Shown here: positions 15,439 to 64,000 of the stretch, piece after piece
Position numbering within the stretch: the stretch's first letter is position 1
How the letters are laid out: every line of letters starts with the position of its first letter
Sequence record: MN871451.1
Length of the DNA: 64,000 nucleotides
Direction: 5' to 3' (one strand)
Position numbers and translations under genes: made by a program
The notes under the pieces: generated by a model
Database searches by the model: none
Told to the model about the DNA's origin: nothing
The model's input: the letters and a program-made list of their open reading frames with translations, nothing else

Positions 15439-15717
15439 ATGGCGATAGATAACAGCGATTTGAATAACTTGTTGAATCAAGTTCTGATTAAAGTCATATG
15501 GACAAATAAAAGAAAAATCGTTAAAGCCCGTAAATTGATGACCCCTGTGTTATTATTCCTCGATACAGCGGAAAGACGGTTCAGCTATACGATTAAACAA
15601 CTTCATTTAATCTATCGTATCAAAAATAATTATTGGGGCCCGATGAAAAAACATATTCTCCGAAAAACTTACGCGTACAGGAAGGTAGCACCTGATGACT
15701 TTGAACCCAAACAATGA
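15439..15717 (+). CDS. Hypothetical basic protein
   Basis: Fits the packed + strand run. Confidence 0.55.
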   Translation: MAIDNSDLNNLLNQVLIKVIWTNKRKIVKARKLMTPVLLFLDTAERRFSYTIKQLHLIYRIKNNYWGPMKKHILRKTYAYRKVAPDDFEPKQ

Positions 15718-16189
15718 CGGTATTGACCACATCAACATTTACTCTAAGTCCAAGAACCGTCTCGGGTTCTTTCTCTCTCACTTTCCAAAGACACCTTTCA
15801 TTCACCCTGAGTACGGAAACTTTGAAAGTATGGAAGGGTTTTGGTATTACGCAAAAACCGGTTTTAAACACCAATACCTCAGAGGCTTGTACGGTAACGA
15901 GGCGAAAGCATTTGGGAAGAAACTGGAAGTGGTTCATCATCCCGATTTCCTCTCGATTATCAAAGCTGCTAATCTGGCGAAATTGAATACTTACAAACAC
16001 CAATACCAAGCGCTGGTCAATTCAACCCTACCTTTTACCCATTACTACGTTTTCGGTAATTGGCGAATGGAGAAAGGGGCGCGTGTCTGGGAAGACGACG
16101 TTAAAGTTGTTACGCCTAAAAGCGGAGAATGGTTAGTGGAGTTTTGGGAAGAAACTCGACGGCTTTTAAAATCTATATCACCTGAGTGA
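15695..16189 (+). CDS. NADAR-like protein (T4 gp30.3 / YbiA-like)
   Basis: LSHFPKTPFIHPEYGNFESMEGFWYYAK matches the NADAR pattern SNF...PF......F.S.E.F.Q..K; followed by LYGNEAKAFGK; AGGAAGG SD. Confidence 0.6.
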   Translation: MTLNPNNDGIDHINIYSKSKNRLGFFLSHFPKTPFIHPEYGNFESMEGFWYYAKTGFKHQYLRGLYGNEAKAFGKKLEVVHHPDFLSIIKAANLAKLNTYKHQYQALVNSTLPFTHYYVFGNWRMEKGARVWEDDVKVVTPKSGEWLVEFWEETRRLLKSISPE

Positions 16190-16190
16190 A
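16173..16190 (+). promoter_or_regulatory. Phage early promoter (CTATATCAC-N5-TGAA)
   Basis: Motif copy embedded in the last codons of the NADAR-like gene, upstream of the sspB-like gene. Confidence 0.7.
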
Positions 16191-16219
16191 GGTAATTAAA
16201 TAACAATCGGGAGTAACAC

Positions 16220-16648
16220 ATGTCTTCTTTAAATAAAGCGTTGTTTGATGCAGGTTATAGCTGGCTTATCGATAATGGCAGCCGTATTTACATCACTGTC
16301 TTTGGTACCGAAATCACCGTGAATCCCATTCTTCGTCAATATGTCAAACCGGTCCCTAACATGCAGGGCTATCACGTATTGACACTGAATGTTTCTCCGC
16401 ATTCCTGTCAGCTTTCTTCACTTGACGAAGGGTTGTTCTTCGAAGGGCGTTTCGGGGGTAAACTCGCCTCAGACACTTTCCCGTGGGGGTCCGTCATTCA
16501 GATGTTTAACCCTGATAACCCGGAACAGATGATTCAACTCCCGCAAAAACTCATCACTGCTGACGGGCGTTCTGACGAACCCACTGAACCGGTAAAAGAA
16601 ACTAAGAAACCAAATCCATTTTCGGTTATCTCCGGAGGGAAGGAATAA
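16220..16648 (+). CDS. sspB: SspB-like ClpXP adaptor homologue
   Basis: ALFDAGYSWLIDNG, LTLNVSPHS, LFFEGRFGG and FPWGSVIQMF parallel E. coli SspB (LRAFYEWLLDN, IVLNIAPRA, VRFNARFGG, VPLAAVLAIY). The C-terminal KKPNPFSVISGG resembles the XB ClpX-binding tail. Confidence 0.8.
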   Translation: MSSLNKALFDAGYSWLIDNGSRIYITVFGTEITVNPILRQYVKPVPNMQGYHVLTLNVSPHSCQLSSLDEGLFFEGRFGGKLASDTFPWGSVIQMFNPDNPEQMIQLPQKLITADGRSDEPTEPVKETKKPNPFSVISGGKE

Positions 16649-16938
16649 TGTCGGCAAAGAAAGTCAAGCAGTCTCCAACTGTCGCCTATGACCGCAATCC
16701 AAATTATCCTTACATCGGCGACATCGTAAGTGAAGCTGATTTACATCTGCTCGCGCGCGATGAAGATCTGTTCTCCGCCAGCATCGGGTTGATTGAGAAA
16801 CATCCCGATGAATTCACTGCGGTGGTCGGAACACCGACAGGAACCATTATCGCCAATGCGTGTGGGTCAATCGAACTTCCGATCCGCACCCTCAAACTGG
16901 GTCAGAAACTTTCCTTGAGGAAGAATCTTAATGGCTAA
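16648..16938 (+). CDS. Hypothetical protein
   Basis: TAATG overlap; packed run. Confidence 0.65.
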   Translation: MSAKKVKQSPTVAYDRNPNYPYIGDIVSEADLHLLARDEDLFSASIGLIEKHPDEFTAVVGTPTGTIIANACGSIELPIRTLKLGQKLSLRKNLNG

Positions 16939-17557: not shown

Positions 17558-17560
17558 CCG

Positions 17561-17600
17561 ACTGAGAGAGGGCGTTACCCCTCTCTCAGTTATTATTTCT
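17561..17600 (+). terminator. Intrinsic terminator
   Basis: 12-bp stem ACTGAGAGAGGG/CCCTCTCTCAGT followed by TATTATTTCT. Confidence 0.7.
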
Positions 17601-18526: not shown

Positions 18527-18841
18527 ATGTTAACGCACGTGATTGAACTGAAATATGTGGAACTCCCTATTGTTCCGACTGAGTACAACGGGTTCTTACG
18601 TATCCTGGCAGGCGACCCCGCCGCCGATATCCTGAATGAACCACCCGTCACGCCACGGTTTCCTGAACAAGACGCGTTAGATTACGCGACCTTGAATTTC
18701 GTGTACGACGGAAATCACACCGCAGTTCTTTATCCTGGTGATTTGATTCTGATTCACGACAACAGTCGGTTCAGTGTTGTACTCAACCCGGATGCGGATT
18801 ACCTGCGAACCCTCCTTTTAACGGTAGGTGTGAAGTCATGA
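18527..18841 (+). CDS. Hypothetical protein
   Basis: GAGGT SD; packed run. Confidence 0.7.
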   Translation: MLTHVIELKYVELPIVPTEYNGFLRILAGDPAADILNEPPVTPRFPEQDALDYATLNFVYDGNHTAVLYPGDLILIHDNSRFSVVLNPDADYLRTLLLTVGVKS

Positions 18842-19080
18842 GTACAGCGGGAATGTTGATATCTGCCGGCGGGGCGCTCTGGGCGGTTGTGTTTCTGATG
18901 ATTGTTTGGAAACCAATTGTTAACCCCAAGTATCGCCGCGTCGTCCTCCGTATGGAGATCTGGAAGGTTTTGACAATTGGTATTGCATGGCCTTTTATCT
19001 GCATCGGAATATTCGTCGGGTTGGTTTGGTACTTGAACATCTATAACCCGTTCAAGAAAGACAACAACGATATACGATAG
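18838..19080 (+). CDS. Small membrane protein (2 TM)
   Basis: Two hydrophobic segments; overlaps the upstream stop. Confidence 0.7.
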   Translation: MSTAGMLISAGGALWAVVFLMIVWKPIVNPKYRRVVLRMEIWKVLTIGIAWPFICIGIFVGLVWYLNIYNPFKKDNNDIR

Positions 19081-19093
19081 GAGAAGAAAATTA

Positions 19094-19486
19094 ATGGCGT
19101 TAATGAAAACACTATCAGCAATATTGTTTTCTGGGGCAGGGATCAGTTTGAGCTATTACCTCCCATGGGCGGAGAAGCGTTTGTTTCTGATGAAGTTAAA
19201 CGCTAATCGGAAAAGTCTCCGTCACGCCAGTTACCACGACCAGGTGTTCGCTAAACGCGCAGTGAAACTGCTCTATCGGAATCTCCGTTCCGCTGAAAAG
19301 AAAAGTCTGCCGTTCTCGGCGTTTGTTTCTTTAGCGGAGGTGTACCAGTACGAACCCGCACACCTGGTTGTTTTTCTCACCCCAACGGCAACGAGTTTAA
19401 CTGTAGAGGTCTATATCCGTAGCCGTCGTTTTGATAATCGTAAATACAAAGTTCGTACATGGACTTTCCGTCCCTGGACCGAATAA
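19094..19486 (+). CDS. Hypothetical protein with an N-terminal hydrophobic segment
   Basis: AGGAGA SD; packed run. Confidence 0.7.
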   Translation: MALMKTLSAILFSGAGISLSYYLPWAEKRLFLMKLNANRKSLRHASYHDQVFAKRAVKLLYRNLRSAEKKSLPFSAFVSLAEVYQYEPAHLVVFLTPTATSLTVEVYIRSRRFDNRKYKVRTWTFRPWTE

Positions 19487-19499
19487 AGGAAACTAAAAC

Positions 19500-19814
19500 A
19501 TGTTGAATCAGATTATTGAGATTTGTGGTCTAGATGCCGATGAAGAAGTAGATATGGCGTACGCTGCCGAGTTAGAGAAAACCGTGACGATGTTACTCGA
19601 GCGGAATGACGTTGGCCATGTTATCGGCACGATGAACCAGCTGATTGTAGATGGTCCGGTCTACGATGGCGATATTCATTCTAAGTCAGGGCGGGATTTC
19701 CTTCTGATGGAAGACTACGCCGTCAAGGTGGTAGTCAAGAATGAGCAGGGATTCAATGCGATGAATCATAAGGGCTGGGACTTGCATCGTCTTTATCACC
19801 ATTTCGTAGGCTAA
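19500..19814 (+). CDS. Hypothetical protein (GPVYDGDIHSKSGRD family)
   Basis: Motif recurrent in enterobacterial phage hypotheticals; AAGGA SD. Confidence 0.7.
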   Translation: MLNQIIEICGLDADEEVDMAYAAELEKTVTMLLERNDVGHVIGTMNQLIVDGPVYDGDIHSKSGRDFLLMEDYAVKVVVKNEQGFNAMNHKGWDLHRLYHHFVG

Positions 19815-19832
19815 TAAGGAAGGGTATATCAG

Positions 19833-21044
19833 ATGTTTGACTTAGGCGTAGTAATCGGTAAATTCGCACCCCTTACGTTGGGGCACATCAACTTAATCAC
19901 AGAGGCTGCTGTGCAGTCTAAGCATGTCCTCGTCATTCTTTCCCACGACCAACGTTGGCTGGATAAACAATCGCCACGAGACCAAAAGGTACTCAATTTC
20001 AAGAATCGTCTGCGCTGGCTGCAACAGACTTACGCGGATACAGAGCACGTCACGATCGATTTCATTGATGAGGCTTCTGTACCGGAATACCCGAACGGCT
20101 GGAAAGAATACGCTGCTCTGCTCGGCGCTAAGATTTTCAACGAGGCAGGTAGACTGGCAGCTAATCACAGTCAGGCGCAGAGCATTGCTATTTTCAGTAG
20201 CGAGCTGGATTACGATGAAAAATACAAAACGCACCTCGGTTTTGTAGAACACGTTATCGTTGACAGTAACCGTACCCGCGTCCCCATCTCCGCCACGATG
20301 ATCCGTGAAAACCTTTACGACCATTGGGAATATCTCCCGAGCATTGTCCGTAAAGATTATTGTTTGCGGGTGGTCGTATTAGGCGTTGAGAGTTCTGGGA
20401 AAAGTTCCCTCGTCAAGAACCTCGCCAAACTCTACAATACCAGCTGGGTTGAAGAGTACGGCCGTACGTACTGTGAAACGGTCTTAGCGGGTTCGGAAGC
20501 GACTCTCCGTAGTTCTGACTACCCGTTGATTGCGTATCGTCACAAAGAGCTGGAGGAGGAAGCATTACGTACTTCTAATCGACTCTGTTTCATCGATACG
20601 AACGCCTTCATTACGGAATATTACCATCGGCTGTACGAGGGTAAACCTAACCCTATTGTTTCTGCTATCGCGGCTGAAGAGCATTACGATCTCGTGTTGA
20701 TTCTTTCGCCGGAAGTACCATGGGTCGATGATGGTCTGCGGCTGAATCCTGACCGCGAGAAAACAGAGAGTCTCTTCCAACAAATGCTTTGGGAATTTAA
20801 AAACCAAACACCATGGGGGCGCACTGTATTCATTAAAGGGGACTCTTACAAAGGTCGTTTAGATCAATCACGTGAAGCGGTTGATAACTTGTTATCCGGT
20901 AACGGCACTGCCGGCCAGAGCGCTCCAGAAATTCCAAATAAGTTCCCTCCTGCTGCCAGCGGTGGTAACTTTGATAAAGATTGGAGTATGGTAGAAAGCA
21001 TCGAGGCTGGTTCTCATCAGAACCCCGCTGATTGGGGTGGATGA
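19833..21044 (+). CDS. nadR: NadR-type bifunctional NMN adenylyltransferase / ribosylnicotinamide kinase (no HTH repressor domain)
   Basis: IGKFAPLTLGH ((H/T)xGH motif), ISATMIRENLYDHWEYLP, Walker A GVESSGKSS, EEYGRTY, FIDTN, WVDDGLR. Confidence 0.95.
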   Translation: MFDLGVVIGKFAPLTLGHINLITEAAVQSKHVLVILSHDQRWLDKQSPRDQKVLNFKNRLRWLQQTYADTEHVTIDFIDEASVPEYPNGWKEYAALLGAKIFNEAGRLAANHSQAQSIAIFSSELDYDEKYKTHLGFVEHVIVDSNRTRVPISATMIRENLYDHWEYLPSIVRKDYCLRVVVLGVESSGKSSLVKNLAKLYNTSWVEEYGRTYCETVLAGSEATLRSSDYPLIAYRHKELEEEALRTSNRLCFIDTNAFITEYYHRLYEGKPNPIVSAIAAEEHYDLVLILSPEVPWVDDGLRLNPDREKTESLFQQMLWEFKNQTPWGRTVFIKGDSYKGRLDQSREAVDNLLSGNGTAGQSAPEIPNKFPPAASGGNFDKDWSMVESIEAGSHQNPADWGG

Positions 21045-21048
21045 TTTC

Positions 21049-21192
21049 ATGACTCAACAACGGCGTACGCAACGCAAAATAAAGCGGATGTTAGGCGATA
21101 ACTATCGCTTTTACCACGCTGTATTTGGCGACAAACTTAATCTGAGATCCGCAAGTTACATCTCAACTTTTCTCGAAGGATTTAATAGATGA
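21049..21192 (+). CDS. Small basic protein, 47 aa (not in the ORF track)
   Basis: MTQQRRTQRKIKRMLGDNYRF...; fills the nadR-pnuC gap exactly; its stop overlaps the pnuC ATG (ATGA). Confidence 0.55.
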   Translation: MTQQRRTQRKIKRMLGDNYRFYHAVFGDKLNLRSASYISTFLEGFNR

Positions 21193-21878
21193 ACTCATTG
21201 GTAATGAAAACTTTCACTGACTTTGCGCACTGGAAGAAAGTCGAATACTTTTGGCTGATCGTAGCGTTAATCGTCGTCGGATTAGGGAGCTGGCAAGCCA
21301 GTCCGTTAGAATTCACGGCAGCGCTGACTAACGTCGTCTGCGTGATTCTGGTGGCGAAGGGTCGCGTCTCTAATTATTACTGGGGGACGATTGGCGTAAT
21401 TACCTACGGTATTGTTTCGTACAATACCGGCCTTTATGCCAATGCGGCGTTGAACGCTATTTACCTTCCCATGCAGTTTATCGGTATTTATTACTGGACG
21501 AAAGACCTGGGCAAAACTCCAGCCAAAGCTGACGTAGCGGTTAAAACGATCACTTTACGTGACGTGATAACTTATCTGGTTGTTGGGGTTATCTTCTGGT
21601 ATGGCCTGACCGAATACCTGAAAACTACGCAGGATCCGTTTCCTGCATTAGACGCGTTCTGCTTAGTCGCATCGCTCATCGCCATGTGGATGATGATCAA
21701 GCAGCAGCCAGAGCAATGGATTCTCTGGATCATTATCAACTGCGTCACGATTTATCTGTGGGTGATCCCGGCGCTTAATCAACCGGGTTCATGGGCGCAG
21801 GTGGCACAGTGGGCAGTATTCTTGATGAATGCTTTCTACGGCCTTTGGAAGTGGTATATCACCAAAACCAACAAATAA
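21189..21878 (+). CDS. pnuC: PnuC nicotinamide riboside transporter
   Basis: Multi-TM protein; NVVCVILVAKGRVSNYYWG, MQFIGIYYW, DPFPALDAF, EQWILWIIIN; adjacent to nadR. Confidence 0.93.
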   Translation: MNSLVMKTFTDFAHWKKVEYFWLIVALIVVGLGSWQASPLEFTAALTNVVCVILVAKGRVSNYYWGTIGVITYGIVSYNTGLYANAALNAIYLPMQFIGIYYWTKDLGKTPAKADVAVKTITLRDVITYLVVGVIFWYGLTEYLKTTQDPFPALDAFCLVASLIAMWMMIKQQPEQWILWIIINCVTIYLWVIPALNQPGSWAQVAQWAVFLMNAFYGLWKWYITKTNK

Positions 21879-21908
21879 GTTTACTGGTTTAAAAAATAGG
21901 AAATAGAA

Positions 21909-22349
21909 ATGAATCGTTACGCTGATAATGATTTCGACGTAAAGTCGTTATTAAAGAAGGTGGGTAAATGGGCGGCCATCGGCATTGTTGCGTTTATAGT
22001 GCTGCTGATGGCGGGGTGCCCGTACTACAATGTTTGGCAGCAGGGGATGGCGGGGAAAGCCGCTCTGATGAAAGCCACGCAGGATCGTCAGATCGCCGTA
22101 CAGGAAGCAGAGGCTAAGAAAGAGTCCGCTAAAAGTTTGGCGGAGGCAGAGGTTATTCGTGCAGGCGGTGTCGCCAAGGCGAACAAGATCATTGGTGACA
22201 GCTTGAAGAACAACGAAGCGTATCTCCGTTACCTTTGGGTAGATAGCTTACAGCAAACTAAGAACCAAGTGATCTACGTCCCGACAGAAGCGAATCTCCC
22301 GGTGATGGAAGCGAACCGTTTTAATAACGGCCTACCGCCTGAAAAATAG
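21909..22349 (+). CDS. Membrane-anchored SPFH/band-7-like coiled-coil protein
   Basis: TM helix, then QEAEAKKESAK...AEAEVIRAGGVAKANKII.DSL...YLRYLW...VIYVPTEANLP. Confidence 0.7.
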   Translation: MNRYADNDFDVKSLLKKVGKWAAIGIVAFIVLLMAGCPYYNVWQQGMAGKAALMKATQDRQIAVQEAEAKKESAKSLAEAEVIRAGGVAKANKIIGDSLKNNEAYLRYLWVDSLQQTKNQVIYVPTEANLPVMEANRFNNGLPPEK

Positions 22350-22361
22350 CCAGAGGTGTAA

Positions 22362-22649
22362 ATGAGCGATTCTGATTCCGTAGAAAAAATAGGAATTCTT
22401 GAAAGTTATGAACATTCCGGGAAGTGGATCGAAATGGTCATAGACGGTAAAGAAAGTTCCATGAAGTACGGTTACTTGCGTGTTTTGGCTTTTACTTTGC
22501 CTGATCGTCTTTGGTATCATGAAGTTGAAGAGATTACAAAAGTAATTCCCAGATGGCCAGAAGGGGCGCGCGTTAAACATGTTCATGGGGAAATTGTTGC
22601 TATCTGGATTCCAACTAAGAATCTTTGGATACGGCAAAAAAGACATTAA
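22362..22649 (+). CDS. Hypothetical protein
   Basis: GAGGT SD; followed by a terminator. Confidence 0.7.
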   Translation: MSDSDSVEKIGILESYEHSGKWIEMVIDGKESSMKYGYLRVLAFTLPDRLWYHEVEEITKVIPRWPEGARVKHVHGEIVAIWIPTKNLWIRQKRH

Positions 22650-22654
22650 ATGAG

Positions 22655-22685
22655 AGGAGAGGCTTTTGCCTCTCCTTTTTTATTT
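22655..22685 (+). terminator. Intrinsic terminator
   Basis: AGGAGAGGC-tttt-GCCTCTCCT followed by a T-run. Confidence 0.8.
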
Positions 22686-22723
22686 TCTCGTCAATTGCTC
22701 TGAATGAAAGGAGGGTTTAATTT

Positions 22724-23080
22724 ATGCGCGAAGCAATTATGGTGTTAAAATCCAACGTTGGCGATGTCAACTTTTACCCCGTGGAAGGCGGTCCGTCCGG
22801 AATGGAAATAGGGAAAGTTTACCTGTTATCCCGTTTAAAGGACCCTCTTTCGATAGGAGTTTACATCAATCCGATGTTTTGTGACGAAGACCTTGAAATG
22901 CCCTTTATGGCGCGAGTGTTAAAATATATCAACGAGTCTGATTCGGAATATATTTTCACATGGGTTCGGGTCACGGATAAAGACGAAACAACGGTGACGC
23001 TAGACGCCTTATTCAATAATGACCCACCTATCAAGATGCGGTATAGGTTGACCGAAGAAGATAAAAGAAAACTGCACTGA
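22724..23080 (+). CDS. Hypothetical protein
   Basis: AAGGAGG SD. Confidence 0.7.
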   Translation: MREAIMVLKSNVGDVNFYPVEGGPSGMEIGKVYLLSRLKDPLSIGVYINPMFCDEDLEMPFMARVLKYINESDSEYIFTWVRVTDKDETTVTLDALFNNDPPIKMRYRLTEEDKRKLH

Positions 23081-23090
23081 GGAAAAAAAG

Positions 23091-24008
23091 ATGGAAAGTA
23101 TTGAAATTAAATATGGCAATATCCGTGGCAAAAATCCAATTATTCCATTGCTGGAAACGCCAACTTTCGAACTAAAAGAGGATTGGGGAGATAATTCCCC
23201 CATTATTCTTAACGGAGTGGAAACAGTTTTAGACGATGCTAAGCAGTACTTCCTTTACGACGTTCTCGGTTTTTGCGGCTGCGGTATGCCTTTCGAGGCA
23301 CAGGTATTTTGGTTAGCTCAGATTAATGCTGTTGTGTCAGGGACAAAAATGGATTACATGGGGTACCCTGGTGGCGTGGAGTTTTTCACGGAAACAGCGA
23401 TTCGTCAGGGTATTATTACCCCCGAAGGGAACTTAACAAATTTGGGTAAACTCACGATACTTTTTGTCGAAAAATATATTGAGATCTGTCCGGACGGCGA
23501 CGACGAAGTCCCCGGGGATTTCACCCCGACTCTCAGTATCCCAGACGCCGCTAAACGTAATAGTAAGTGGTTCTTATTCAAATTCATGACTCATCTCGCC
23601 TTGCGTAAACGTGCTGTCTCCCCTACTAAAACGGATACAACAGACCTTTATGAAAAACGAGGGGAGATCTGGGCGAGATTACCTCAGCCGGTTTATTTTT
23701 GGGTGGCTTATCAGCTCGGTAATTTAGATTGGGAGGAACATGGCGGGTCAGCGGGCGGGTGGTTATCTGTAAAAGGCTATGAAGTATTCTGGGCTTTGGT
23801 TGATGAATTCGGCGTAGGTGAAATAGAAGTGTTTGATCTCTTAGAGAAGGGATACCTTTTTAAAGATGACGACCTTTTAAAAGTAGAGCTACAGAAACGC
23901 CGTAGTGCATTTATTGCAGTACGACCCGATTTAGATTGGGATGTAATCATTCCTCCCCCAACCATCGATATTCGTACTGCCATACAACAATCTTTTGGAG
24001 GAGAATAA
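23091..24008 (+). CDS. Hypothetical protein (FCGCG.P / EHGGS.GGWL family)
   Basis: Conserved phage motifs GFCGCGMP and AYQLGNLDWEEHGGSAGGWLSVKG. Confidence 0.75.
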   Translation: MESIEIKYGNIRGKNPIIPLLETPTFELKEDWGDNSPIILNGVETVLDDAKQYFLYDVLGFCGCGMPFEAQVFWLAQINAVVSGTKMDYMGYPGGVEFFTETAIRQGIITPEGNLTNLGKLTILFVEKYIEICPDGDDEVPGDFTPTLSIPDAAKRNSKWFLFKFMTHLALRKRAVSPTKTDTTDLYEKRGEIWARLPQPVYFWVAYQLGNLDWEEHGGSAGGWLSVKGYEVFWALVDEFGVGEIEVFDLLEKGYLFKDDDLLKVELQKRRSAFIAVRPDLDWDVIIPPPTIDIRTAIQQSFGGE

Positions 24009-24009
24009 A

Positions 24010-24414
24010 ATGGAATTGAATCCTAACGAAGTCCCTCTCAATGACAAAGGCGAGCAAGCCAATCTCGTCTTAAAATTTGGTAATGAACTCATCCCCTTCT
24101 GGATCGCCAGTGATCGCTTCACTCATTTAGTTCCCGGTGAACGTTATCTGGCCGTTTTCATGGACAATGAAGAGGCTGTAGGCGATAACGTTTGGTTCTT
24201 GTCGTCTAATCGTGAATTGGATACCGTTGAATGGGAAAGTATTGATTTAACGATCCAAAGTCAGAACGAGAAAAGTGGCGTTGTAGATATCACCCAAAAT
24301 GACGCAACAACGACAGTTCTGCACTACGCTTTCCGCGAAGATCTGGGAAACATTTCTTTGGCGCACGACACAGACCCCGAGAAAGCCTCGGTGGTAGTAA
24401 AAGACAAGCACTAA
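24010..24414 (+). CDS. Hypothetical protein
   Basis: GGAGGAG SD before ATG 24010. Confidence 0.7.
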   Translation: MELNPNEVPLNDKGEQANLVLKFGNELIPFWIASDRFTHLVPGERYLAVFMDNEEAVGDNVWFLSSNRELDTVEWESIDLTIQSQNEKSGVVDITQNDATTTVLHYAFREDLGNISLAHDTDPEKASVVVKDKH

Positions 24415-24431
24415 TTCCGGAGGGGACGAAA

Positions 24432-24920
24432 GTGGACTTTATTGGAATAACAATGGTAGTATTACTAGCAATTATTGTTATCTCAAAAGGATTGCTTATT
24501 TATCGAAAACGTACATCCTCTACAAAACGCAATATATCCGAAGAATATATTACCACGTTAACTAATGCAATTGTCGAAGAAGCTTCTAATCAAACATTTT
24601 CCATTTTAATCGCGATAAAAGCGGTCAAAACCGGAGCAGTTAATAACGTCACAATGAGGAAGAATAATACTCGTATTGAGAAAGATCCTTATGGGAAAGT
24701 AAGGGTAAAGATAGAACGCAAAAGATTGATCTTAACTTCCCAAGACGTAAAGGATCAAGTCGTAAAACAACTCAGGGGTGGCTTACCCAGAGTTAATTTG
24801 GAATTTATAAACTTAGTAGTGATAAAAGCCTTAGGTAATGATGTATCAATGGCAGCAGGGCATTTACTGGTTCTTCTGTCATCAACATTGGATGAAAACA
24901 CAATCATAGAGGAAATTTAA
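24432..24920 (+). CDS. Membrane-anchored hypothetical protein
   Basis: GGAGGGG SD, GTG start, N-terminal TM. Confidence 0.65.
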   Translation: MDFIGITMVVLLAIIVISKGLLIYRKRTSSTKRNISEEYITTLTNAIVEEASNQTFSILIAIKAVKTGAVNNVTMRKNNTRIEKDPYGKVRVKIERKRLILTSQDVKDQVVKQLRGGLPRVNLEFINLVVIKALGNDVSMAAGHLLVLLSSTLDENTIIEEI

Positions 24921-24921
24921 C

Positions 24922-25113
24922 ATGTCTAAAGTCTATCTGCCCGATAATGATCCTGCTGATGTTTTTCATCAGCGTCAGTTATTAGCCGAGGCATTATACG
25001 ATGTCCTCGTCGCAGCCGGTATGTTAAATACCGATACTCAACCGAACGGTGCTGAGCTGATTCAGTTCGCAGGTGAATTCGTTGAATTCTCAAAGGGTAA
25101 AGTAAATGGCTGA
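24922..25113 (+). CDS. Hypothetical protein
   Basis: 63 aa; packed run. Confidence 0.65.
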   Translation: MSKVYLPDNDPADVFHQRQLLAEALYDVLVAAGMLNTDTQPNGAELIQFAGEFVEFSKGKVNG

Positions 25114-26311: not shown

Positions 26312-26672
26312 TGACCGCATTTACGTCATGACAGCCCTTTTCTGGGCGGTCATTCTTACCGCTGAAAACGCAGATTCAAAGTATGCTGGGAAAATTTTAC
26401 ATCAGGCGTTTTCAGAGCAAGCCTACCACCAATTTATCGAGCCCTGTTACCCAGACAGCGCTGAGGATCCCCCGCCTACTGACAACCCAGATAGGTTATA
26501 CGAGGTCTTTGAGAAGTTCTCTCAGCATATCGATGTTTATTGCGGGTGGCCAACGATCTATCGATTTTTCTTTGAGAAAATTGATCTTGGGAGTTACATC
26601 TCAGATGACGATGTTCAGTTTGAACTAGAAGTCAATCCACATCAAAACTTTTTGCAAATAGAGGTATTTTAA
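26244..26672 (+). CDS. Hypothetical protein
   Basis: AAGGA SD; overlaps the 3' end of the previous gene; start uncertain. Confidence 0.6.
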   Translation: MGTFILGIPERLSMGLRKIKDPDDRIYVMTALFWAVILTAENADSKYAGKILHQAFSEQAYHQFIEPCYPDSAEDPPPTDNPDRLYEVFEKFSQHIDVYCGWPTIYRFFFEKIDLGSYISDDDVQFELEVNPHQNFLQIEVF

Positions 26673-27224: not shown

Positions 27225-27227
27225 CAT

Positions 27228-27245
27228 CTATATCACTTGATTGCA
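27228..27245 (+). promoter_or_regulatory. Phage early promoter (CTATATCAC-N5-TGCA)
   Basis: Motif copy; intergenic. Confidence 0.7.
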
Positions 27246-27308
27246 TATACGACAGATAAGTCACTTTAAAATCATTTAACAACAACCTTTAACTAAGCGA
27301 GTAATAAA

Positions 27309-27713: not shown

Positions 27714-27720
27714 TTTGACG

Positions 27721-27770
27721 CTTCCTCTCTCCTTCGGGAGAGAGGAAGGTTCTATGTTCTCTTTTTCTTT
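27721..27770 (+). terminator. Terminator hairpin
   Basis: 12-bp stem CTTCCTCTCTCC-ttcg-GGAGAGAGGAAG. Confidence 0.75.
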
Positions 27771-27787
27771 TGGATTTGTTTTCAAGT

Positions 27788-27805: not shown

Positions 27806-27829
27806 GAGGAAAAATAAAAGGAGAAATAA

Positions 27830-52741: not shown

Positions 52742-52767
52742 TCTCCTGAGGCGAAAGCCTCAGGAGA
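52742..52767 (+). terminator. Hairpin (GNRA loop), terminator-like
   Basis: TCTCCTGAGGC-gaaa-GCCTCAGGAGA; no immediate U-tract. Confidence 0.5.
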
Positions 52768-58577: not shown

Positions 58578-59303
58578 ATGATTCATTACGTTAACAATGA
58601 CATTACAGACGAAGAGCTCAACCGATTCATTCTCGATAAAGAGGGTAATTTGAAAACGGTAGTTTCATTACCGTATCGGATCTTAGTCCATAAGTTAAAA
58701 TTCCCTCTTCAGATGGCGATGGTACAGGAGAAGAAGATCAGCTTTACAGAAGCTGAAGCACTGCTCTTCCGCGATCTGAATAACCCGCCAGATTATCACG
58801 TTAATTTGCTCATTGATCTTCTGCAGAAAAATAAAAATCAGGTCTCCCTTTTCCGTAATACACCAGACGGCGTAAAGCAGTCGATTTTCACTGTTGGCTC
58901 GATTCTGTTCCTCGGTAATCTTTCACGTCAAGAAGTAGTATTATGCAATAACAGTAATGGTACACAACCTCCTGAAAAACCAAAGGAAAAACCGAAAATG
59001 GCAAAAGCACGCAAACCTTCTACGCCGGGCGAAATTCTTTTGAAAGAATACCTGGAACCGAAAGAAATTTCTCCGACTGATTTCGCTGCGCATATCGGTC
59101 TGGCGACGGCAACGCTGTCTCGTCTGATCAACGGCAAAACCAAACTGACGATCCGCACCGCGCACCGCCTGGCAAAGGCTACCAAAACCACCGTCGAATT
59201 CTGGGTTAATCTCCAGCAGGCGGTTGACCTCGCTGAAGCCAAAGCTGATAAAGAGCTGGCCGCCGAAGTGAAAGCGATCAAACTGCACCCGGCGTTTAAA
59301 TAA
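58578..59303 (+). CDS. Hypothetical N-terminal region fused in frame to a HigA-like HTH domain
   Basis: GAGGGA SD; no stop before the HigA-like part. Confidence 0.55.
   Translation: MIHYVNNDITDEELNRFILDKEGNLKTVVSLPYRILVHKLKFPLQMAMVQEKKISFTEAEALLFRDLNNPPDYHVNLLIDLLQKNKNQVSLFRNTPDGVKQSIFTVGSILFLGNLSRQEVVLCNNSNGTQPPEKPKEKPKMAKARKPSTPGEILLKEYLEPKEISPTDFAAHIGLATATLSRLINGKTKLTIRTAHRLAKATKTTVEFWVNLQQAVDLAEAKADKELAAEVKAIKLHPAFK
58998..59303 (+). CDS. higA: Orphan HigA-family (Xre HTH) antitoxin-like protein
   Basis: STPGEILLKEYLEP...FAAHIG....LSRLINGK..LT...A.RLA....TTVEFWVNLQ...DL; own AAGGA SD; abrupt shift to highly biased codons. Confidence 0.8.
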   Translation: MAKARKPSTPGEILLKEYLEPKEISPTDFAAHIGLATATLSRLINGKTKLTIRTAHRLAKATKTTVEFWVNLQQAVDLAEAKADKELAAEVKAIKLHPAFK

Positions 59304-59382: not shown

Positions 59383-61689
59383 TTAAGCTATCTCATAATA
59401 CCCCGCTACATCGTAGTAAATATAAGGCGCATTTCCAGCACTAGTGTTCAGGTTTGCCGCGTTAAACGTGGTTGCCGAGACTCCGCTTAAAATTTTTAAG
59501 GTCGTATTTGTAATACTTGCCTTTAAATTCATTGCATCAGTCGCGCCGATAATGTTTTTAACCTCGATACTTGAAATCGAATTACCGCCACTTGCAACAC
59601 TTACAGGTAAGTTACCTATAGTTATTGGACCAGAAGGGTAAGCCAACGCGCCGTTTTTAAATAGTTTTAGGGAGAAGAAGAAAATTTTACCTACAATCTT
59701 ACCTGTACCTACAGCAGTTTCTAAATTAGTATATTCAACCCCATTTACAAAAAGCGTTGGGATAAAACTTATTTTTCCAGCATAGACAAAATCCTCGTAA
59801 GAACCCAACGAACCATGAGGCAGTATCGCACGACTTTCATTAATACTACCTATTATCCGATAACCGTTTTCATCAAAAATTGAAACTAAAAACGGATCTC
59901 TGGTTTGTTTTGCTCCTTTACTAGGATATGTAATAGAAACCGAAAGCGGGTTATTCGTCCCTATCCCATTGGCAGAATATGCAGCTAGTTGACAGTTTGA
60001 CGAGAGTACCACCTTGTCAGAATTGAACCCGTGTGCAACTAAATAACCGATACCATAACCTTCGGGTCTATAAACATCTCGATTATCAACACCAAAGAAA
60101 TTTCCAGTCGCAGAAGAACCCAAAGAACGTTGAATTAAACCAACGCCCTCTAGATAAATATTATTGATAGAACAAAGATACGTCACTATCCCATTCTCGT
60201 TATTAAAGAAAAACGGTGCTCTATGAGGGCCTAAAACTTTGACTGATTTAATTTCGTAAGAAGCAGCTGCGCGACCGTAGCGAGAATAAACAGTAAGGAC
60301 TCTCCCTACTACCCCACGATAAGGGCTCATTTTTGAAGCTGTCCCGCCGGTATTATTAGATAATCTCCCGCCTGCCGAAGTTTTTGCACTATTGGCGTTT
60401 TTGTAGAAATAAGTATCAAAATAAGTATCAACACTCTTATGTCGATCACCGAAAGCTTGATCAACTTGCCCATAAACAACAAAATCAACTTTATAAAAAT
60501 CGGTCCAACCTAATGACCATACGTCTGTCGCTGGATACGGCGGTAAATACGGGTTATTGTTACTATCATTTCTTTGCGTCCACCAACCACCGTGAATATC
60601 TCCTGTGTAGTTACCTGAGAAATGTAAGGTTCCGGCAGAACAACGTTCAATGCCCTGAAATATACCGGCTATGGCGCAATTAGAAACTTTAATTTGTTCA
60701 AAGGATTGTTCTGCCGTTCCTTCTACTACTCTACCTATAAAGAAATTAGAAATATTGATATTAATTAAATTATATATTACAGTCCCTTGATATTTACTCC
60801 CAGCAGTAAAAAGAATACCAATCGGCTGATCGGTATCTATAGGAGACGAATTTATTGACCAATTCCCTACAAATCCGTCTTTATTTACATCTGATCCGCG
60901 AATAGTTACTCTACCAGTTAATTTAAGGCACACTGGTTGCGTGTAAATAGTCTCCGGTGAGAGATTACTGTCCCCGTTATTTACCCATCCCGGATAAACA
61001 GTACCGTCATCTCCAGGAAGCGTTAAAGTAGTAGTTGTGCTGAAAATATTATAAAAGCCAGAAACAGTAATTTCACTCGCCGAGGCTTTTGATGCGTAAT
61101 CAAATGCTTTTTGGACATAATTTGTCGAATCAAAAGTAGGTGATATTGAATTCGGGATTGCACCAAACATTGTTAAATCTAGTGATAATCTCTCTACGCG
61201 CTGCCAATAAAATCCGTTTCCTGCCGCGATTACACCACCGTCATCTGTAGCTGATCCGGTGAAACCCACAAATTCCCCTCCACCTAAAGCTTGACCTTCA
61301 TGCCAACTGCGCAAATAAATTTTTTGCCCTGTTCTGAAAACCGGCAGCGCGCGGAGAGCGGCAAAACTCCCTATTTCTTCAACAAAATTTACAGGTATAT
61401 TCTGTTGAATTTTCCCGTAGGCGTCTAAAATCGTCACGCTGTAATGCGTTTCTACCGAAAGAGTAACTGTGTTACCTAAATTATCAACAGGTATCCCATT
61501 GCTGTTTAGAGCAATGGGTTGTGAAATAGTAGATACCGTACCGTCTGTTTTCATTGCGGTTACTGTCAATTGATTACTTAGCACCGTGGGGTCAGTATTA
61601 ATCTTGCCGATATACAAAGAGCCTGAGTTGGCGGCTCTCCCGCTATCGATCAATCTAAACTGATTGGATGGCATCGAAATAATATTCAT
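59383..61689 (-). CDS. Tailspike with a P22/Sf6/HK620-type head-binding domain
   Basis: IISMPSNQF...LYIGKINTDP...NQL.V....DG....ISQPIALNSNG.PV...HYSVTILDAYG matches the P22-like N-terminal domain. Followed by FAALRAL...LRSWHEG..LGGGEF...DDGGVI...WQR and LTMFGA...VQKAFDYA, then a beta-helix. Confidence 0.88.
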   Translation of the reverse strand: MNIISMPSNQFRLIDSGRAANSGSLYIGKINTDPTVLSNQLTVTAMKTDGTVSTISQPIALNSNGIPVDNLGNTVTLSVETHYSVTILDAYGKIQQNIPVNFVEEIGSFAALRALPVFRTGQKIYLRSWHEGQALGGGEFVGFTGSATDDGGVIAAGNGFYWQRVERLSLDLTMFGAIPNSISPTFDSTNYVQKAFDYASKASASEITVSGFYNIFSTTTTLTLPGDDGTVYPGWVNNGDSNLSPETIYTQPVCLKLTGRVTIRGSDVNKDGFVGNWSINSSPIDTDQPIGILFTAGSKYQGTVIYNLININISNFFIGRVVEGTAEQSFEQIKVSNCAIAGIFQGIERCSAGTLHFSGNYTGDIHGGWWTQRNDSNNNPYLPPYPATDVWSLGWTDFYKVDFVVYGQVDQAFGDRHKSVDTYFDTYFYKNANSAKTSAGGRLSNNTGGTASKMSPYRGVVGRVLTVYSRYGRAAASYEIKSVKVLGPHRAPFFFNNENGIVTYLCSINNIYLEGVGLIQRSLGSSATGNFFGVDNRDVYRPEGYGIGYLVAHGFNSDKVVLSSNCQLAAYSANGIGTNNPLSVSITYPSKGAKQTRDPFLVSIFDENGYRIIGSINESRAILPHGSLGSYEDFVYAGKISFIPTLFVNGVEYTNLETAVGTGKIVGKIFFFSLKLFKNGALAYPSGPITIGNLPVSVASGGNSISSIEVKNIIGATDAMNLKASITNTTLKILSGVSATTFNAANLNTSAGNAPYIYYDVAGYYEIA

Positions 61690-61817
61690 GTAGTTGGCAC
61701 TCCAAACCGTGTGGATATAGCTTGTTTCTTGTCACAAGAAACGGGTTAATGCGAAGTCATCACCTCTATTATCACGCCAATCTAAATTATTTTGAACCCG
61801 CTATTAAGGAAATCAAC

Positions 61818-62357
61818 ATGTTATTTTCAATGATTGTCGCGCACGATCTCGATTACATTATCGGACAAGATGATAAACTTGCTTGGAAATCAAAAGAAGA
61901 CCTTTCATGGTTTGTAAGAAAAACCAAAAATAAAGCCATCGTCATGGGGTCTACTACGGCTAAGGGTATTGGCCGGGCTTTACCCGGACGAGCCCATTAT
62001 GTTCTGACCTCTGATCCCAGTCAGTTTGAAAACACCCCCGAACTCCTCGCGTATAGCTCATTTGAAGATATCGCTGTAGACGCCTCTAGAAAAGGCTACA
62101 ACGAGATTGTTATCTGCGGAGGGGTAAGTATCTACAAACAACTATTAGATCGGGTACAGAAGCTTTACGTGACGGAAATCCCTATTCGCTCCAAAGGGAA
62201 TGTTCCGCTCGACATTGATCTTATCCAAGAACTCAGTAAACTATTCTCTTATACTACCGTTCACCGTGGTTGGACCCTTGAGTCGCATGAATTCGGGGAA
62301 GACGAGGGATGTCGTTTCTCTACGTTCGTGAAAATACAGAATCCAATAACACGCTGA
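61818..62357 (+). CDS. folA: Dihydrofolate reductase
   Basis: MIVAHD...IIGQDDKLAW..KEDLSWF...T...IVMGSTT..IGRALPGR.HYVLT, ICGGVSIY; ATG 61818 after AAGGA. Confidence 0.92.
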   Translation: MLFSMIVAHDLDYIIGQDDKLAWKSKEDLSWFVRKTKNKAIVMGSTTAKGIGRALPGRAHYVLTSDPSQFENTPELLAYSSFEDIAVDASRKGYNEIVICGGVSIYKQLLDRVQKLYVTEIPIRSKGNVPLDIDLIQELSKLFSYTTVHRGWTLESHEFGEDEGCRFSTFVKIQNPITR

Positions 62358-62405
62358 TAATATTTATTTTGAAGATTAAGATTTAACACTTTCAAAGGGG
62401 TTACA

Positions 62406-63269
62406 ATGTTTAAAGTTACGTTTGATGACCAACCGGTCCTTTATGAAAATTTAACTTTCCCGGGTGGCGAGGAACATATCGCCATTAGTCGTCATGGTCT
62501 ACCGCCTCATGATATCGGTGTTGTTAAAATAGAAGGAAGTATCAAATCCTCCACCGAGGCAGTGCGTCTACTGTTACTGGTCGATGCCATTCGTCGTATT
62601 GGGAAATACACGGCGAAAACAGAACTCCATTTAGTTGTGCCTTATTTCCCGTACGCGCGACAAGACCGTGTCTGTAATGCAGGCGAATCGTTTTCACTCG
62701 GCGTTTTTGCTGAACTGTTCAACAGCCTGAAAGCAGACCGAGTGTTGATACACGATCCTCACTCTAACGTTACCCCGGCGCTGATAAAAAACCTCGTCGT
62801 CCTGGAACAGTCCAAAATTGTCTACAATTTATTGGCTAATTGGATTCGGGAAAATAACGTCGTGTTAGTTTCACCGGACGGCGGCGCGGCGAAGAAAACT
62901 GAAGAGTTGGCAAAACTACTCGGCGGGGTGCCTATCGTTTACGCAAACAAAAAGCGCGATACTAAAACCGGCAACATTCTCGACATTACGTTATTGGACA
63001 ATGACAATATCGAAGGTCGTAATTTGTTGGTTGTCGACGACATCTGCGATGGTGGGTGGACTTTCACTGAGCTGGCGAAAAAACTCAATACCCAAAACCC
63101 GAAATCGCTCAGTCTCTTCGTGACCCATGGAATTTTTTCCAAGGGCCTGGGTGAACTCTCTATCGCTTTTGATCAGATTTTCTCAACCAACGTTTGGTGG
63201 GAAAATATCACTGACGACGGGTTACCAACCCAATCTTATTTAACTGCTAAAGATGGACGTGTGAAATGA
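62406..63269 (+). CDS. Prs-like pyrophosphokinase; candidate ADPR-PP synthetase (Adps)
   Basis: FPGGE, PYFPYARQDR, DPHS, VSPDGGA, KKRD..TG, VVDDICDGGWTF, THGIFSKG; translationally coupled to the Nampt-like gene. Confidence 0.88.
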   Translation: MFKVTFDDQPVLYENLTFPGGEEHIAISRHGLPPHDIGVVKIEGSIKSSTEAVRLLLLVDAIRRIGKYTAKTELHLVVPYFPYARQDRVCNAGESFSLGVFAELFNSLKADRVLIHDPHSNVTPALIKNLVVLEQSKIVYNLLANWIRENNVVLVSPDGGAAKKTEELAKLLGGVPIVYANKKRDTKTGNILDITLLDNDNIEGRNLLVVDDICDGGWTFTELAKKLNTQNPKSLSLFVTHGIFSKGLGELSIAFDQIFSTNVWWENITDDGLPTQSYLTAKDGRVK

Positions 63270-64000
63270 CCAACCCTTTACTGAAAGACCCAAAGTTCTA
63301 TACTGAAGATCCGCTGGTTTTCCTGCTGTGCGACGCCTACAAAACGGGGCACATCAATCAACAACCTCTGGGCACTGACAGCTTCTTTGAAAACCTGACG
63401 GCGCGTAGTCATACGTACTTCAATACGCCTCTGGACTTCGACGGTTCGGTGTTCATGGGAATGCAGCGCCTGGTTCTGCGTTGGTTGGTGGGAAGTTTCG
63501 ATAACTTCTTTAAAGCGCCGTTCAACGAATCGGAGGCAGAATACCTTCAGTATATGGATGGTGTTCTGGGTAAAGGTGTGGTGAAATCCGCTCACCTGAA
63601 AGCACTTCACGAGCTGGGTTATCTCCCACTGGAAATCCGTGCGGTACCGGAAGGCTCACTCGTCCCTATTCGTGTTCCATTCCTGACGATTGAAAACACA
63701 GTGGATGGCTTCGGGTGGCTGACGGGTTATTTCGAAGACCTCTGGAGTAACGAACTCTGGAAGCCATGTGTGCTGGCAACGAAAGCGTTGCACTTCCGTC
63801 GAGTGTTAGAGCAGTACGCTAACGAAACGGGTGCGGCAAAAGCCTTTATCGACTACCAATCTCATAACTTCGCACTGCGCGGTATGTCGGGTATGTTCGA
63901 TGATGCCAACAGCTCAGTCGGTCAGCTGATCTACTTCAAAGGGAGCGATAGCTTCCCTTCGGTCTGGACAGCGAATCGCTTCTATAACCCAGAAGGCGAT
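63266..64000 (+). CDS. Nampt-like phosphoribosyltransferase; candidate Namat (3'-truncated by the window; not in the ORF track)
   Basis: ATG overlaps the prs-like TGA; open to the window end. CDAYKTGH, LHELGYLPLEIRAVPEGS.VP...P.LTIENT, HNFALRGMSG, FKGSDS. Confidence 0.9.
   Translation, partial: MTNPLLKDPKFYTEDPLVFLLCDAYKTGHINQQPLGTDSFFENLTARSHTYFNTPLDFDGSVFMGMQRLVLRWLVGSFDNFFKAPFNESEAEYLQYMDGVLGKGVVKSAHLKALHELGYLPLEIRAVPEGSLVPIRVPFLTIENTVDGFGWLTGYFEDLWSNELWKPCVLATKALHFRRVLEQYANETGAAKAFIDYQSHNFALRGMSGMFDDANSSVGQLIYFKGSDSFPSVWTANRFYNPEGD

Follow-up and report, generated by a model that had tools for sequence, protein, structure and literature searches.

NAD+ and ADP-ribose genes in the accessory region of phage KpYy_2_45

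We analyzed a window of 64,000 nucleotides from sequence record MN871451.1, the genome (302 kb) of the Klebsiella jumbo phage KpYy_2_45, for genes whose predicted products make, use or detach nicotinamide adenine dinucleotide (NAD+) or ADP-ribose (ADPR). Positions 19000–34000 of the window correspond to 205000–220000 of the record. Tail-fibre and depolymerase proteins are encoded at 1607–13670, and from approximately 13.7 kb onwards there is a long plus-strand run of small accessory genes, which extends past the window end. The initial annotation of this DNA had counted seven NAD+/ADPR genes in 48 kb. All of the open reading frames (ORFs) that it named are indeed present on the plus strand, and profile and structure searches left its family calls essentially intact, but the proper count is eight NAD/ADP-ribose genes and the gene of an HD-superfamily protein, among the approximately 89 genes of the segment.

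An annotated relative, Siatvirus KpLz-2_45, is 99% identical to the window, and in the Maaswegvirus phages FBKp24 and Centimanus the proteins of the genes tested are 69–97% identical to their homologues in the window. The records of these relatives already carry the labels nadR, pnuC, kptA, 'ribose-phosphate pyrophosphokinase' and 'nicotinamide phosphoribosyl transferase'. The genes in question are listed below under the names of the families to which they were assigned; gene anatomy and family membership come from the present analysis, while enzyme activities are in all cases inferred from characterised homologues.

15695–16189, plus strand: divergent NADAR-like protein, 164 amino acids (aa) (AlphaFold2 model with a predicted local distance difference test score, pLDDT, of 96; Foldseek matches to NADARs in PDB)
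19833–21044, plus strand: NadR-like bifunctional nicotinamide mononucleotide (NMN) adenylyltransferase/ribosylnicotinamide kinase, without the helix-turn-helix (HTH) domain (Pfam CTP_transf_like and AAA_28)
21189–21878, plus strand: PnuC nicotinamide-riboside transporter (Pfam NMN_transporter, 3e-43; TIGR01528 above cut-off)
28985–29713, plus strand: HD-superfamily phosphohydrolase with a class-I phosphodiesterase-like fold, 242 aa (invariant H46/H50/H87-D88/D97/D160)
29691–30218, plus strand: conserved 175-aa protein, its gene overlapping with that of the HD protein and abutting tpt1 (86% identical in FBKp24)
30223–30786, plus strand: Tpt1/KptA NAD+-dependent RNA 2'-phosphotransferase (Pfam PTS_2-RNA, 1e-42)
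32668–33264, plus strand: Macro_2-like protein of the yeast YMR087W/Appr-1''-pase type (Pfam Macro_2, 4.8e-5, below cut-off)
37458–37931, plus strand: macro-domain protein of the phrog_335/T4 Tk.4 family, predicted Adpp homologue (phrog_335, 4e-41)
61722–62357, plus strand: dihydrofolate-reductase (DHFR)-like gene directly 5' of Adps, not an NAD+ gene (FBKp24 and Centimanus homologue annotated DHFR)
62406–63269, plus strand: Adps, predicted phosphoribosyl-pyrophosphate (PRPP)-synthetase-like ADP-ribose pyrophosphokinase of NARP1 (phrog_619, 6.5e-88)
63266–64000, cut by the window end, plus strand: Namat, predicted Nampt-like nicotinamide ADP-ribose transferase of NARP1 (PDB 9W5W)

The scans for NAD+/ADPR genes were confined to the accessory region. 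Pfam scans of approximately 30 neighbouring ORFs for 2H phosphoesterase, RNA ligase, Nudix, Sir2, ART and SLOG domains revealed no NAD+-related domain, and only ThyA and a BCS1-like AAA ATPase turned up. No tRNA genes were found in the window.

Predicted transcription units

The plus strand of the window contains terminator-like hairpins with a common GAGAGG/CCTCTC stem and T-runs (34 and 33 sites versus approximately 21 expected). We also identified a promoter-like motif, TCGA-N5-TTTTaAnat-CTATATCAC-nnnAGTGaAG, with seven exact 9-mer cores versus approximately 0.5 expected by our own estimate. Copies of the motif are all on the plus strand and at the fronts of genes, six of them being intergenic and one lying within the 3' end of the ORF at 15695–16189. 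The motif resembles the AT-rich early promoters of phages that have their own RNA polymerase. A scan of the window for sigma-70 promoters gave no enrichment (30 and 28 sites versus approximately 32 expected).

17560–17591, 22652–22679, 27721–27748, 31694–31716, 33267–33295, 35432–35458, plus strand: terminator-like hairpins (stem and T-run)
38911–38938, 44536–44559, 45967–45998, 51670–51690, 52742–52767, plus strand: further terminator-like hairpins (stem and T-run)
7912, 16173, 27228, 27788, 40426, 44585, 46024, 57165, plus strand: promoter-motif sites (motif search; seven exact cores)
27788–27796, plus strand: promoter-like motif (CTATATCAC core) before the HD/Tpt1 unit (motif match)

The hairpins follow genes ending at 17557, 22649, 27713, 31687, 33264, 35425 and 38907, and terminators are annotated throughout the syntenic block in the FBKp24 record. 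The hairpin at 31694–31716 closes a unit (27830–31687) that is preceded by the motif and holds the HD gene, the 29691 gene, tpt1 and two further genes of no assigned kind. No copy of the motif precedes the nadR-pnuC, Macro_2, macro or Adps-Namat units, and the Macro_2-like gene is the last of its own unit (31740–33264). The placement of the hairpins and of the motif suggests that the nine genes are distributed over at least six units. Physical coupling is limited to three sets, namely nadR with pnuC, Adps with Namat, and tpt1 with the HD and 29691 genes.

The Adps-Namat and nadR-pnuC pairs

NARP1 rebuilds NAD+ from ADPR through the successive action of Adps and Namat (10.1101/2024.02.11.579819). 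The genes at 62406 and 63266, a Prs/Nampt pair in the initial annotation, overlap as ATGA (Adps stop and Namat start), and the same gene pair is found in FBKp24 and Centimanus. The full-length product of the second gene (593 aa; L002:2267-4048 in the source record) has as its best PDB match the Namat of SPbetaL1 (9W5W, 2.4e-117), genuine Nampts being matched only at approximately 1e-38. The selectivity-clamp helix of SPbetaL1 Namat has two aromatic residues (F392/Y396; PMC12774641), and both are kept in the phage protein: its GSFEFQY aligns with GSFTYQY, while human Nampt has Gly and Lys there. R40 of the SPbetaL1 clamp loop aligns with a Thr beside a 4-residue insertion (YFNT), the clamp loop being described as variable (PMC12774641), and two insertions (approximately residues 267–295 and 358–424) set the protein apart from the solved SPbetaL1 Namat of 491 aa.

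The acceptor and catalytic residues reported for Adps are F18, R87, H121, D161, K185 and D212/213/216 (PMC13586617). The 62406 protein contains F18, R85, H119, D158, K182/183 and D211/212/215, i.e. all of the named residues, shifted by 1–3 positions. Pfam labels the pair as Pribosyltran/Pribosyltran_N and NAMPT_N. Its predicted identity is nevertheless NARP1 (Adps and Namat), as judged from the overlapping genes and the proximity of the second protein to a validated Namat.

The nadR-pnuC pair is predicted to be NARP3, the pathway (Bas30_86 NadR and Bas30_87 PnuC) in which imported nicotinamide riboside is used to rebuild NAD+ (Yan et al. 2026, PMC13464706). The NadR-PnuC call had been made before, and it is confirmed by Pfam, by NCBIfam (NadR, 3e-77) and by PDB, in which the best matches of NadR are 9X6F/9X6H, i.e. 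Bas30_86 (2.8e-142, against 2e-56 for Escherichia coli NadR). The NCBIfam match is limited to positions 65–408 of the NadR model (PRK08099), which indicates that the HTH domain is absent. The pair thus resembles the described NARP3 in the adjacency of the two genes and in its HTH-less NadR, but differs from it in residing in a 300-kb jumbo phage alongside NARP1, in a 51-aa ORF (21037–21192) that bridges nadR and pnuC, and in a C-terminal extension of NadR of approximately 45 aa past the solved construct. The PnuC protein is 45–47% identical to PnuC of phages of approximately 110–123 kb.

Two macro-domain proteins

The 37458 protein is a firm member of phrog_335, although its Pfam match is weak (6e-4) and its matches to macro domains in PDB are at approximately 1e-5. 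Its full-length alignment with gp176 of Vibrio phage Athena shows 35% identity (E 3e-22). The Athena protein, which is encoded between Adps and Namat, is in turn 98% identical to its counterpart next to Adps in Vibrio phage Gary. The Gary protein, Adpp, converts ADP-ribose-1''-phosphate (ADPR-1''P) to ADPR and lets NARP1 overcome aRES defence (10.64898/2026.01.28.702374). The motifs GQ[FY]H and GCGLAGGDW are common to the 37458 protein and the Thalassavirus Adpp homologue.

The initial annotation had named macrodomains among the phage proteins that can erase ADP-ribose marks. The 37458 protein does have the macro fold of the DarG/TARG1/AdfM hydrolases, with weak matches to TARG1 and DarG in PDB and to the NCBIfam DarG model (1.6e-11, 44 bits, far under the cut-off of 250 bits). 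However, in an alignment with TARG1/OARD1 the position of the catalytic Lys (TARG1 K84/DarG K80) is occupied by Gln and that of D125 by Ala. The absence of these residues, together with the homology to Adpp, makes a small-molecule phosphatase more likely than an 'eraser', and the protein is better read as a homologue of the ADPR-1''P phosphatase Adpp than as a DNA or protein eraser. A DarG-like DNA eraser, the reading hinted at by NCBIfam, was set aside as the leading one on the same grounds.

Both macrodomains are present, the second one at a weak level. The Macro_2 match of the 32668 protein (23.3 bits, against a gathering score of 27 bits) covers only residues 19–57, and NCBIfam reports an ADP-ribose-binding protein at 2e-6. 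The best PDB match is 1njr (1.3e-5, over two segments), which we take to be yeast YMR087W, an Appr-1''-phosphatase. Some phage records with a Macro_2-like gene annotate it as appr-1-pase. We regard this protein as a second candidate phosphatase. We also considered whether it could be an Adpp homologue, and rejected this, since it has no detectable similarity to the Thalassavirus Adpp.

The overlapping Prs-like/Nampt-like pair, a Namat closest to the solved SPbetaL1 protein and retaining the clamp aromatics, and a macro protein with 35% identity to the Adpp that Thalassavirus phages encode in the operon are features that KpYy_2_45 has in common with NARP1 and NARP1-AP (Osterman et al. 2024, 2026). 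The arrangement differs from theirs in several respects. NARP1 begins at 62406, and there is no macro gene in the operon or up to two genes away from it; the two macro genes are located at 37458 and 32668, the Adpp-like one 25 kb upstream in a separate unit. The neighbours of the operon are the DHFR-like gene, which directly precedes Adps, and genes of no assigned kind. Moreover, Namat is 593 aa long, with its two insertions, instead of approximately 490 aa, and there is a second candidate phosphatase of the Macro_2 type.

A divergent NADAR-like protein

The 15695 protein gave no Pfam or NCBIfam match at E 0.01–0.1, including the Pfam NADAR (PF08719) and gp30.3 models, and its 29 homologues are all without a NADAR domain label. 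The only significant PDB matches of its structural model were 2b3w (YbiA), 8bau and 8bat, all NADARs (probability 1.0, 1.0 and 0.54; template modelling (TM) scores 0.5–0.6), and a search of BFVD returned jumbo-phage proteins of unknown function followed by many NADAR-annotated proteins of giant viruses. The NADAR call of the initial annotation therefore holds at the fold level, for what appears to be a divergent clade.

Within the family E47 is nearly invariant, and most members have H116 (PFTHYY). The interval between E47 and K54 is that between E43 and K50 of PnNADAR, an equivalence taken from motif spacing and not from superposition. Phage NADARs carry a histidine where YbiA has a glutamate (PMC11543638, PMC11125620), and H116 fits this mark. 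The protein resembles the anti-DarTG1 NADARs of phages (T4 gp30.3, which is AdfN, NADAR-Bas32 and NADAR-Bas60) in its fold, and may do so in the Glu-x6-Lys pair and in this histidine, but it is missed by the Pfam NADAR and gp30.3 models and belongs to a separate clade in which the Lys varies. The phage NADARs tested to date all have guanine-ADPr DNA as their substrate, reversing the DarT1 modification (PMC11257639).

The HD/Tpt1 unit

The 30223 protein is predicted to be a canonical Tpt1. This call, already made in the initial annotation, is confirmed by Pfam (PTS_2-RNA, 146 bits against a cut-off of 26), by a match to Tpt1 7kw8 in PDB at 1e-40 and by the invariant residues R16-H17, R75 and R120, which align with those of solved Tpt1s and presumably form the Arg-His-Arg-Arg catalytic tetrad of the family.

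The HD protein noted earlier two genes before tpt1 is likewise confirmed, by its invariant metal-site residues and by a fold resembling that of phosphodiesterases (PDEs). The protein itself gave no Pfam match, but among its relatives PDEase_I was matched in 21/50 and HD in 21/50. The family profile matches the HD hydrolase 2pq7 and PDE10A/9A/5 at approximately 5e-10, and the top Foldseek matches of the AlphaFold2 model (pLDDT 93) are PDE2A/TcrPDEC1/PDE4, with TM scores of approximately 0.55. The signature YHN..H/HDxxHxG is that of class-I 3',5'-cyclic-nucleotide phosphodiesterases, here in a compact form of 242 aa. The 29691 protein, encoded between the two, gave no Pfam, PHROG or NCBIfam match and has no HxT/S pair, so that it is not a recognisable 2H enzyme; inspection by eye of the ORFs flanking tpt1 for HxT/S motif pairs was also negative.

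In yeast tRNA splicing, the by-product of Tpt1 is processed by Cpd1 (a 2H enzyme) and then by Poa1p (a macro enzyme). KpYy_2_45 encodes a canonical Tpt1, along with two macro proteins that are relatives of Appr-1''-phosphatases; in contrast to yeast, no recognisable 2H cyclic phosphodiesterase and no ligase that leaves a 2'-phosphate is found near tpt1, and the tpt1 and macro genes are in different units. No domain of a partner producing 2'-phosphates (2H enzyme, Trl1-type ligase) was detected in the approximately 30 neighbouring ORFs.

An RtcB RNA ligase, an enzyme that does not need Tpt1, is encoded by FBKp24 (gp183, L003:22956-24200, approximately 42–43.4 kb in terms of the window) and by Siatvirus KpSz_1, KpZh_1 and KpZh_LPS_45 (90% identical), and it is absent from KpYy_2_45, KpLz-2_45 and Centimanus. 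Otherwise, the FBKp24 RtcB has its nearest relatives (71%) in Erwinia jumbo phages that encode Tpt1 and the NADAR-like protein as well. On the basis of its restriction to FBKp24 and these three Siatvirus isolates, RtcB was rejected as the Tpt1 partner. A 'phosphohydrolase' encoded near tpt1 in Erwinia phage RAY was rejected as a member of the 28985 HD family, since it gave no tblastn or hidden Markov model match.

A survey of tpt1 neighbourhoods in IMG/VR yielded nine loci, six of them outside the clade of KpYy_2_45 and three of the nine in giant viruses. In the six viral contigs from outside the clade, the 10 kb on either side of tpt1 contain no gene of the HD, macro, NADAR or NARP kinds. An uncultured viral contig of 210 kb carries two Tpt1 paralogues one gene apart (L013:9995-10549 and 11090-11809).

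We considered whether the unit at 27830–31687 might constitute a new, virus-specific RNA 2'-phosphate module, in which the HD enzyme would open ADP-ribose-1'',2''-cyclic phosphate (ADPR>p) and the unlinked macro proteins would feed NARP1, so that the NAD+ spent would be recovered. This appears very unlikely. The HD enzyme could equally destroy cyclic-nucleotide immune signals.

Distribution and conservation

Phyletic counts were taken over 50,697 phage records (INPHARED). The Adps family was found in 1578 records (including ICP1 and BASEL phages), PnuC in 802, the NADAR-like family in 516, Tpt1 in 98 and the Macro_2-like family in 45, while the Adpp-like macro family is present in 2801 (range approximately 2200–2800); the distributions thus differ up to 60-fold. 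Among the matches listed, all of the families coincide only in the 13-record clade to which KpYy_2_45 belongs, and the same is true of Tpt1 and Macro_2 taken as a pair. Within this clade Tpt1 is present in 13/13 records and all of the genes are kept in 12/13, the exception being Centimanus, in which the Macro_2 gene and the gene upstream of it have been lost and the rest kept.

KpYy_2_45 and FBKp24 have 80 genes in common, with a median identity of 69%. When these are ranked by identity, Adps (96.5%) comes first and PnuC (96.1%) second. The HD, NADAR-like, 29691 and Tpt1 proteins occupy ranks within 9–16, the Adpp-like macro protein is 28th, and the Macro_2 protein, at rank 41, is at the median.

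Iyer, Burroughs, Anantharaman and Aravind reported that KptA, Macro, NADAR, NadR and NadV-like genes accumulate together in the early/host-takeover regions of jumbo phages (Iyer et al. 2022, PMC9503650). The same kinds of genes accumulate together in KpYy_2_45, and their co-residence exceeds chance only in the sense published in 2022 (PMC9503650). NARP1 and PnuC also occur, unlinked, in MZ311864.1, MN184887.1 and Thalassavirus Noelle, in line with a previous observation that genes of the NadR and NadV-like kinds can be found together (PMC9503650). The 2022 network predates NARP1, NARP3 and Adpp and treats NadV as a Nampt, and neither the present clade nor a PDE-like HD partner of KptA is described there.

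Separate modules or a closed loop

The reading that we consider probable is that the accessory (host-takeover) region stacks separately transcribed counter-defence modules, most of them already published, against NAD+-centred immunity, and is not a dedicated closed loop. According to this model, Sir2, TIR and SEFIR defences would split NAD+ into ADPR and nicotinamide, Adps would pyrophosphorylate ADPR with ATP to the pyrophosphate of ADP-ribose (ADPR-PP), and Namat would join ADPR-PP and nicotinamide to restore NAD+. The 37458 macro protein, and perhaps the 32668 Macro_2 protein, would strip the 1''-phosphate from the ADPR-1''P made by RES-type NADases, and the resulting ADPR would feed NARP1 in trans, as in NARP1-AP. 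NARP3 would act however NAD+ was destroyed: PnuC would import nicotinamide riboside, which NadR would phosphorylate and adenylate to NAD+. The NADAR-like protein would hydrolyse an N-glycosidic ADP-ribose link, most likely that of DarT1-type guanine-ADPr on DNA, or else that of a soluble ADPr derivative, and the Tpt1 unit would spend NAD+ to remove 2'-phosphates from RNA. The modules would then meet only via common metabolites (ADPR, nicotinamide and NAD+).

Several observations, in this and the following two paragraphs, weigh against this reading. The hairpins and the promoter motif are predictions, and read-through might co-express neighbouring units. The 15695 clade is distinct from the tested phage NADARs, occurring mainly in Ackermannviridae and jumbo phages, and K54, one of the two residues matched to PnNADAR, is variable across its family.

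The Adpp-like macro family is very broad and occurs also in phages not known to carry NARP1, such as T4 (Tk.4), which leaves the substrate in any one phage uncertain. This breadth, and the cyclic-nucleotide-phosphodiesterase-like fold and metal site of the HD protein, would suit a different role for part of the set: the NADAR-like protein, the two macro proteins, Tpt1 and the HD enzyme might act on immune signals or toxic metabolites (cyclic ADP-ribose isomers, ADPR-1''P, ADPR>p and cyclic nucleotides) with no part in NAD+ supply. We consider this unlikely, since a macro protein of the same family has been shown to fuel NARP1 (10.64898/2026.01.28.702374) and the tested phage NADARs all act on guanine-ADPr DNA (PMC11257639).

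With regard to Adps, the residues checked are mostly common to PRPP synthetases and do not discriminate it from Prs, and the NCBIfam model TIGR01251 (ribP_PPkin) scores 129 bits, above its cut-off of 113 bits; the Adps assignment thus depends on the partner protein and on the overlapping two-gene architecture. The 62406/63266 pair could accordingly be a true PRPP synthetase and a nicotinamide phosphoribosyltransferase, in which case NMN would be converted to NAD+ by the NMN adenylyltransferase domain of NadR in a NARP2-like de novo salvage. The presence of all of the PRPP synthetase catalytic residues, the Pfam labels, the NMN adenylyltransferase (NadR) of the same genome and the weak Nampt activity that Namat keeps in vitro (PMC12774641) are consistent with such a pathway. 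Arguing against it are the far closer match of the 63266 protein to SPbetaL1 Namat than to Nampts (2.4e-117 versus 1e-38), the clamp aromatics, which Nampts do not have, and the overlapping gene architecture of NARP1; in addition, the same Pfam labels were misleading for the NARP1 of Bas63 (10.1101/2024.02.11.579819). We therefore regard a NARP2-like salvage as rather improbable.

The initial annotation had proposed that these enzymes may form a closed loop, in which NADAR and macro erasers and the processing of the Tpt1 by-product (by the HD and macro proteins) feed ADPR to Adps and Namat, with a top-up from PnuC/NadR. On this reading the whole set would have evolved together. The chemistry of this proposal is coherent, and the segment holds a candidate gene for every step. 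Its last three steps, ADPR-1''P to ADPR to ADPR-PP to NAD+, have experimental precedent elsewhere, in NARP1 and NARP1-AP (10.1101/2024.02.11.579819; 10.64898/2026.01.28.702374), and RyDEP is evidence that the degradation of signals can be linked to NARP1 by phages (10.64898/2026.05.28.727677). The overlap of the HD, 29691 and tpt1 genes in a single promoter-to-terminator unit that is kept in both genera, and the retention of all of the genes in 12 of the 13 clade records, would also be in keeping with it.

However, gene anatomy and the comparison across phages went against a dedicated system. The genes lie in at least six units over 48 kb, the families differ up to 60-fold in their distribution and, among the matches listed, are found together in this clade only, the neighbourhood of tpt1 in the six outside contigs shows no conservation of HD, macro, NADAR or NARP genes, and Centimanus does without Macro_2 while everything else is kept. 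The part of the proposal that makes eraser and Tpt1 products a meaningful source of ADPR, and the HD protein an ADPR>p phosphodiesterase, found no support here: enzymes of the class-I-PDE-like HD type are not known to open ADPR>p, no recognisable 2H cyclic phosphodiesterase lies near tpt1, no ligase making a 2'-phosphate junction was found among the approximately 30 neighbours, RtcB is absent from KpYy_2_45, and the 37458 protein does not have the macro-type eraser residues. Furthermore, the ADPR flux from erased marks and Tpt1 turnover would, by inference, be tiny relative to the NAD+ pool and stoichiometrically negligible beside the ADPR produced by NADases. A closed loop is consequently improbable, and separate stacked modules are the reading that we prefer.

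Other genes of the accessory region

Several further genes were noted in the window. Thymidylate synthase (33735–35114, 459 aa) matches Pfam in two stretches, which indicates a large insertion, and this insertion is kept in FBKp24 and Centimanus (81–82% identity). Two genes encode AAA-type ATPases (39005–40384, with BCS1_N and AAA domains, and 44643–45959); their homologues in FBKp24 are both annotated as AAA family ATPases, and the latter gene has no counterpart in Centimanus. The homologue of the gene at 58578–59303 is annotated in FBKp24 as 'plasmid antitoxin with HTH domain', and a 69-residue stretch shows 43% identity to a protein of Erwinia phage RAY whose gene is near tpt1.

A lone minus-strand gene (59383–61689), encoding a tailspike-like protein of 768 aa, interrupts the plus-strand accessory block. 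Only approximately the N-terminal quarter of this protein is conserved in relatives (49% identity over 26–28% of the length), as would be expected for an exchangeable receptor-binding cassette. The minus-strand ORFs at 63278–63610, 22332–22646 and 18783–19040 are antisense within plus-strand genes and are most likely not genes.

Downstream of the window, further along the accessory block, FBKp24 encodes gp247 (L007:30681-31268), a DprA-like and possibly SLOG protein, and gp261 (L007:21797-22495), a second metal-dependent phosphohydrolase. The NAD+/ADPR gene set may therefore reach beyond the window.

Significance

NARP1, NARP1-AP, NARP3, AdfN and AdfM have all been published, as has the accumulation of KptA, Macro, NADAR and NAD+ salvage genes (in 2022; PMC9503650), and no new principle emerges from this segment. 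What is new is at the level of members and details: one lineage that has both NARP1 and NARP3 as well as an Adpp homologue that is unlinked, a NADAR clade so far unannotated, a Namat with two insertions, and a conserved Tpt1 unit with a PDE-like HD enzyme. More specific names can take the place of the labels 'Prs', 'Nampt', 'tail protein', 'phosphatase' and 'hypothetical protein'.

A single lineage that carries two predicted NAD+ reconstitution pathways together with an in-trans phosphatase of the Adpp type, a second macro candidate, a NADAR clade and a Tpt1 unit would provide a natural test bed for two questions: whether such modules are redundant, additive or specialised for individual defences (Sir2/TIR, aRES or Metis-type), and whether Adpp works when it is unlinked from NARP1.

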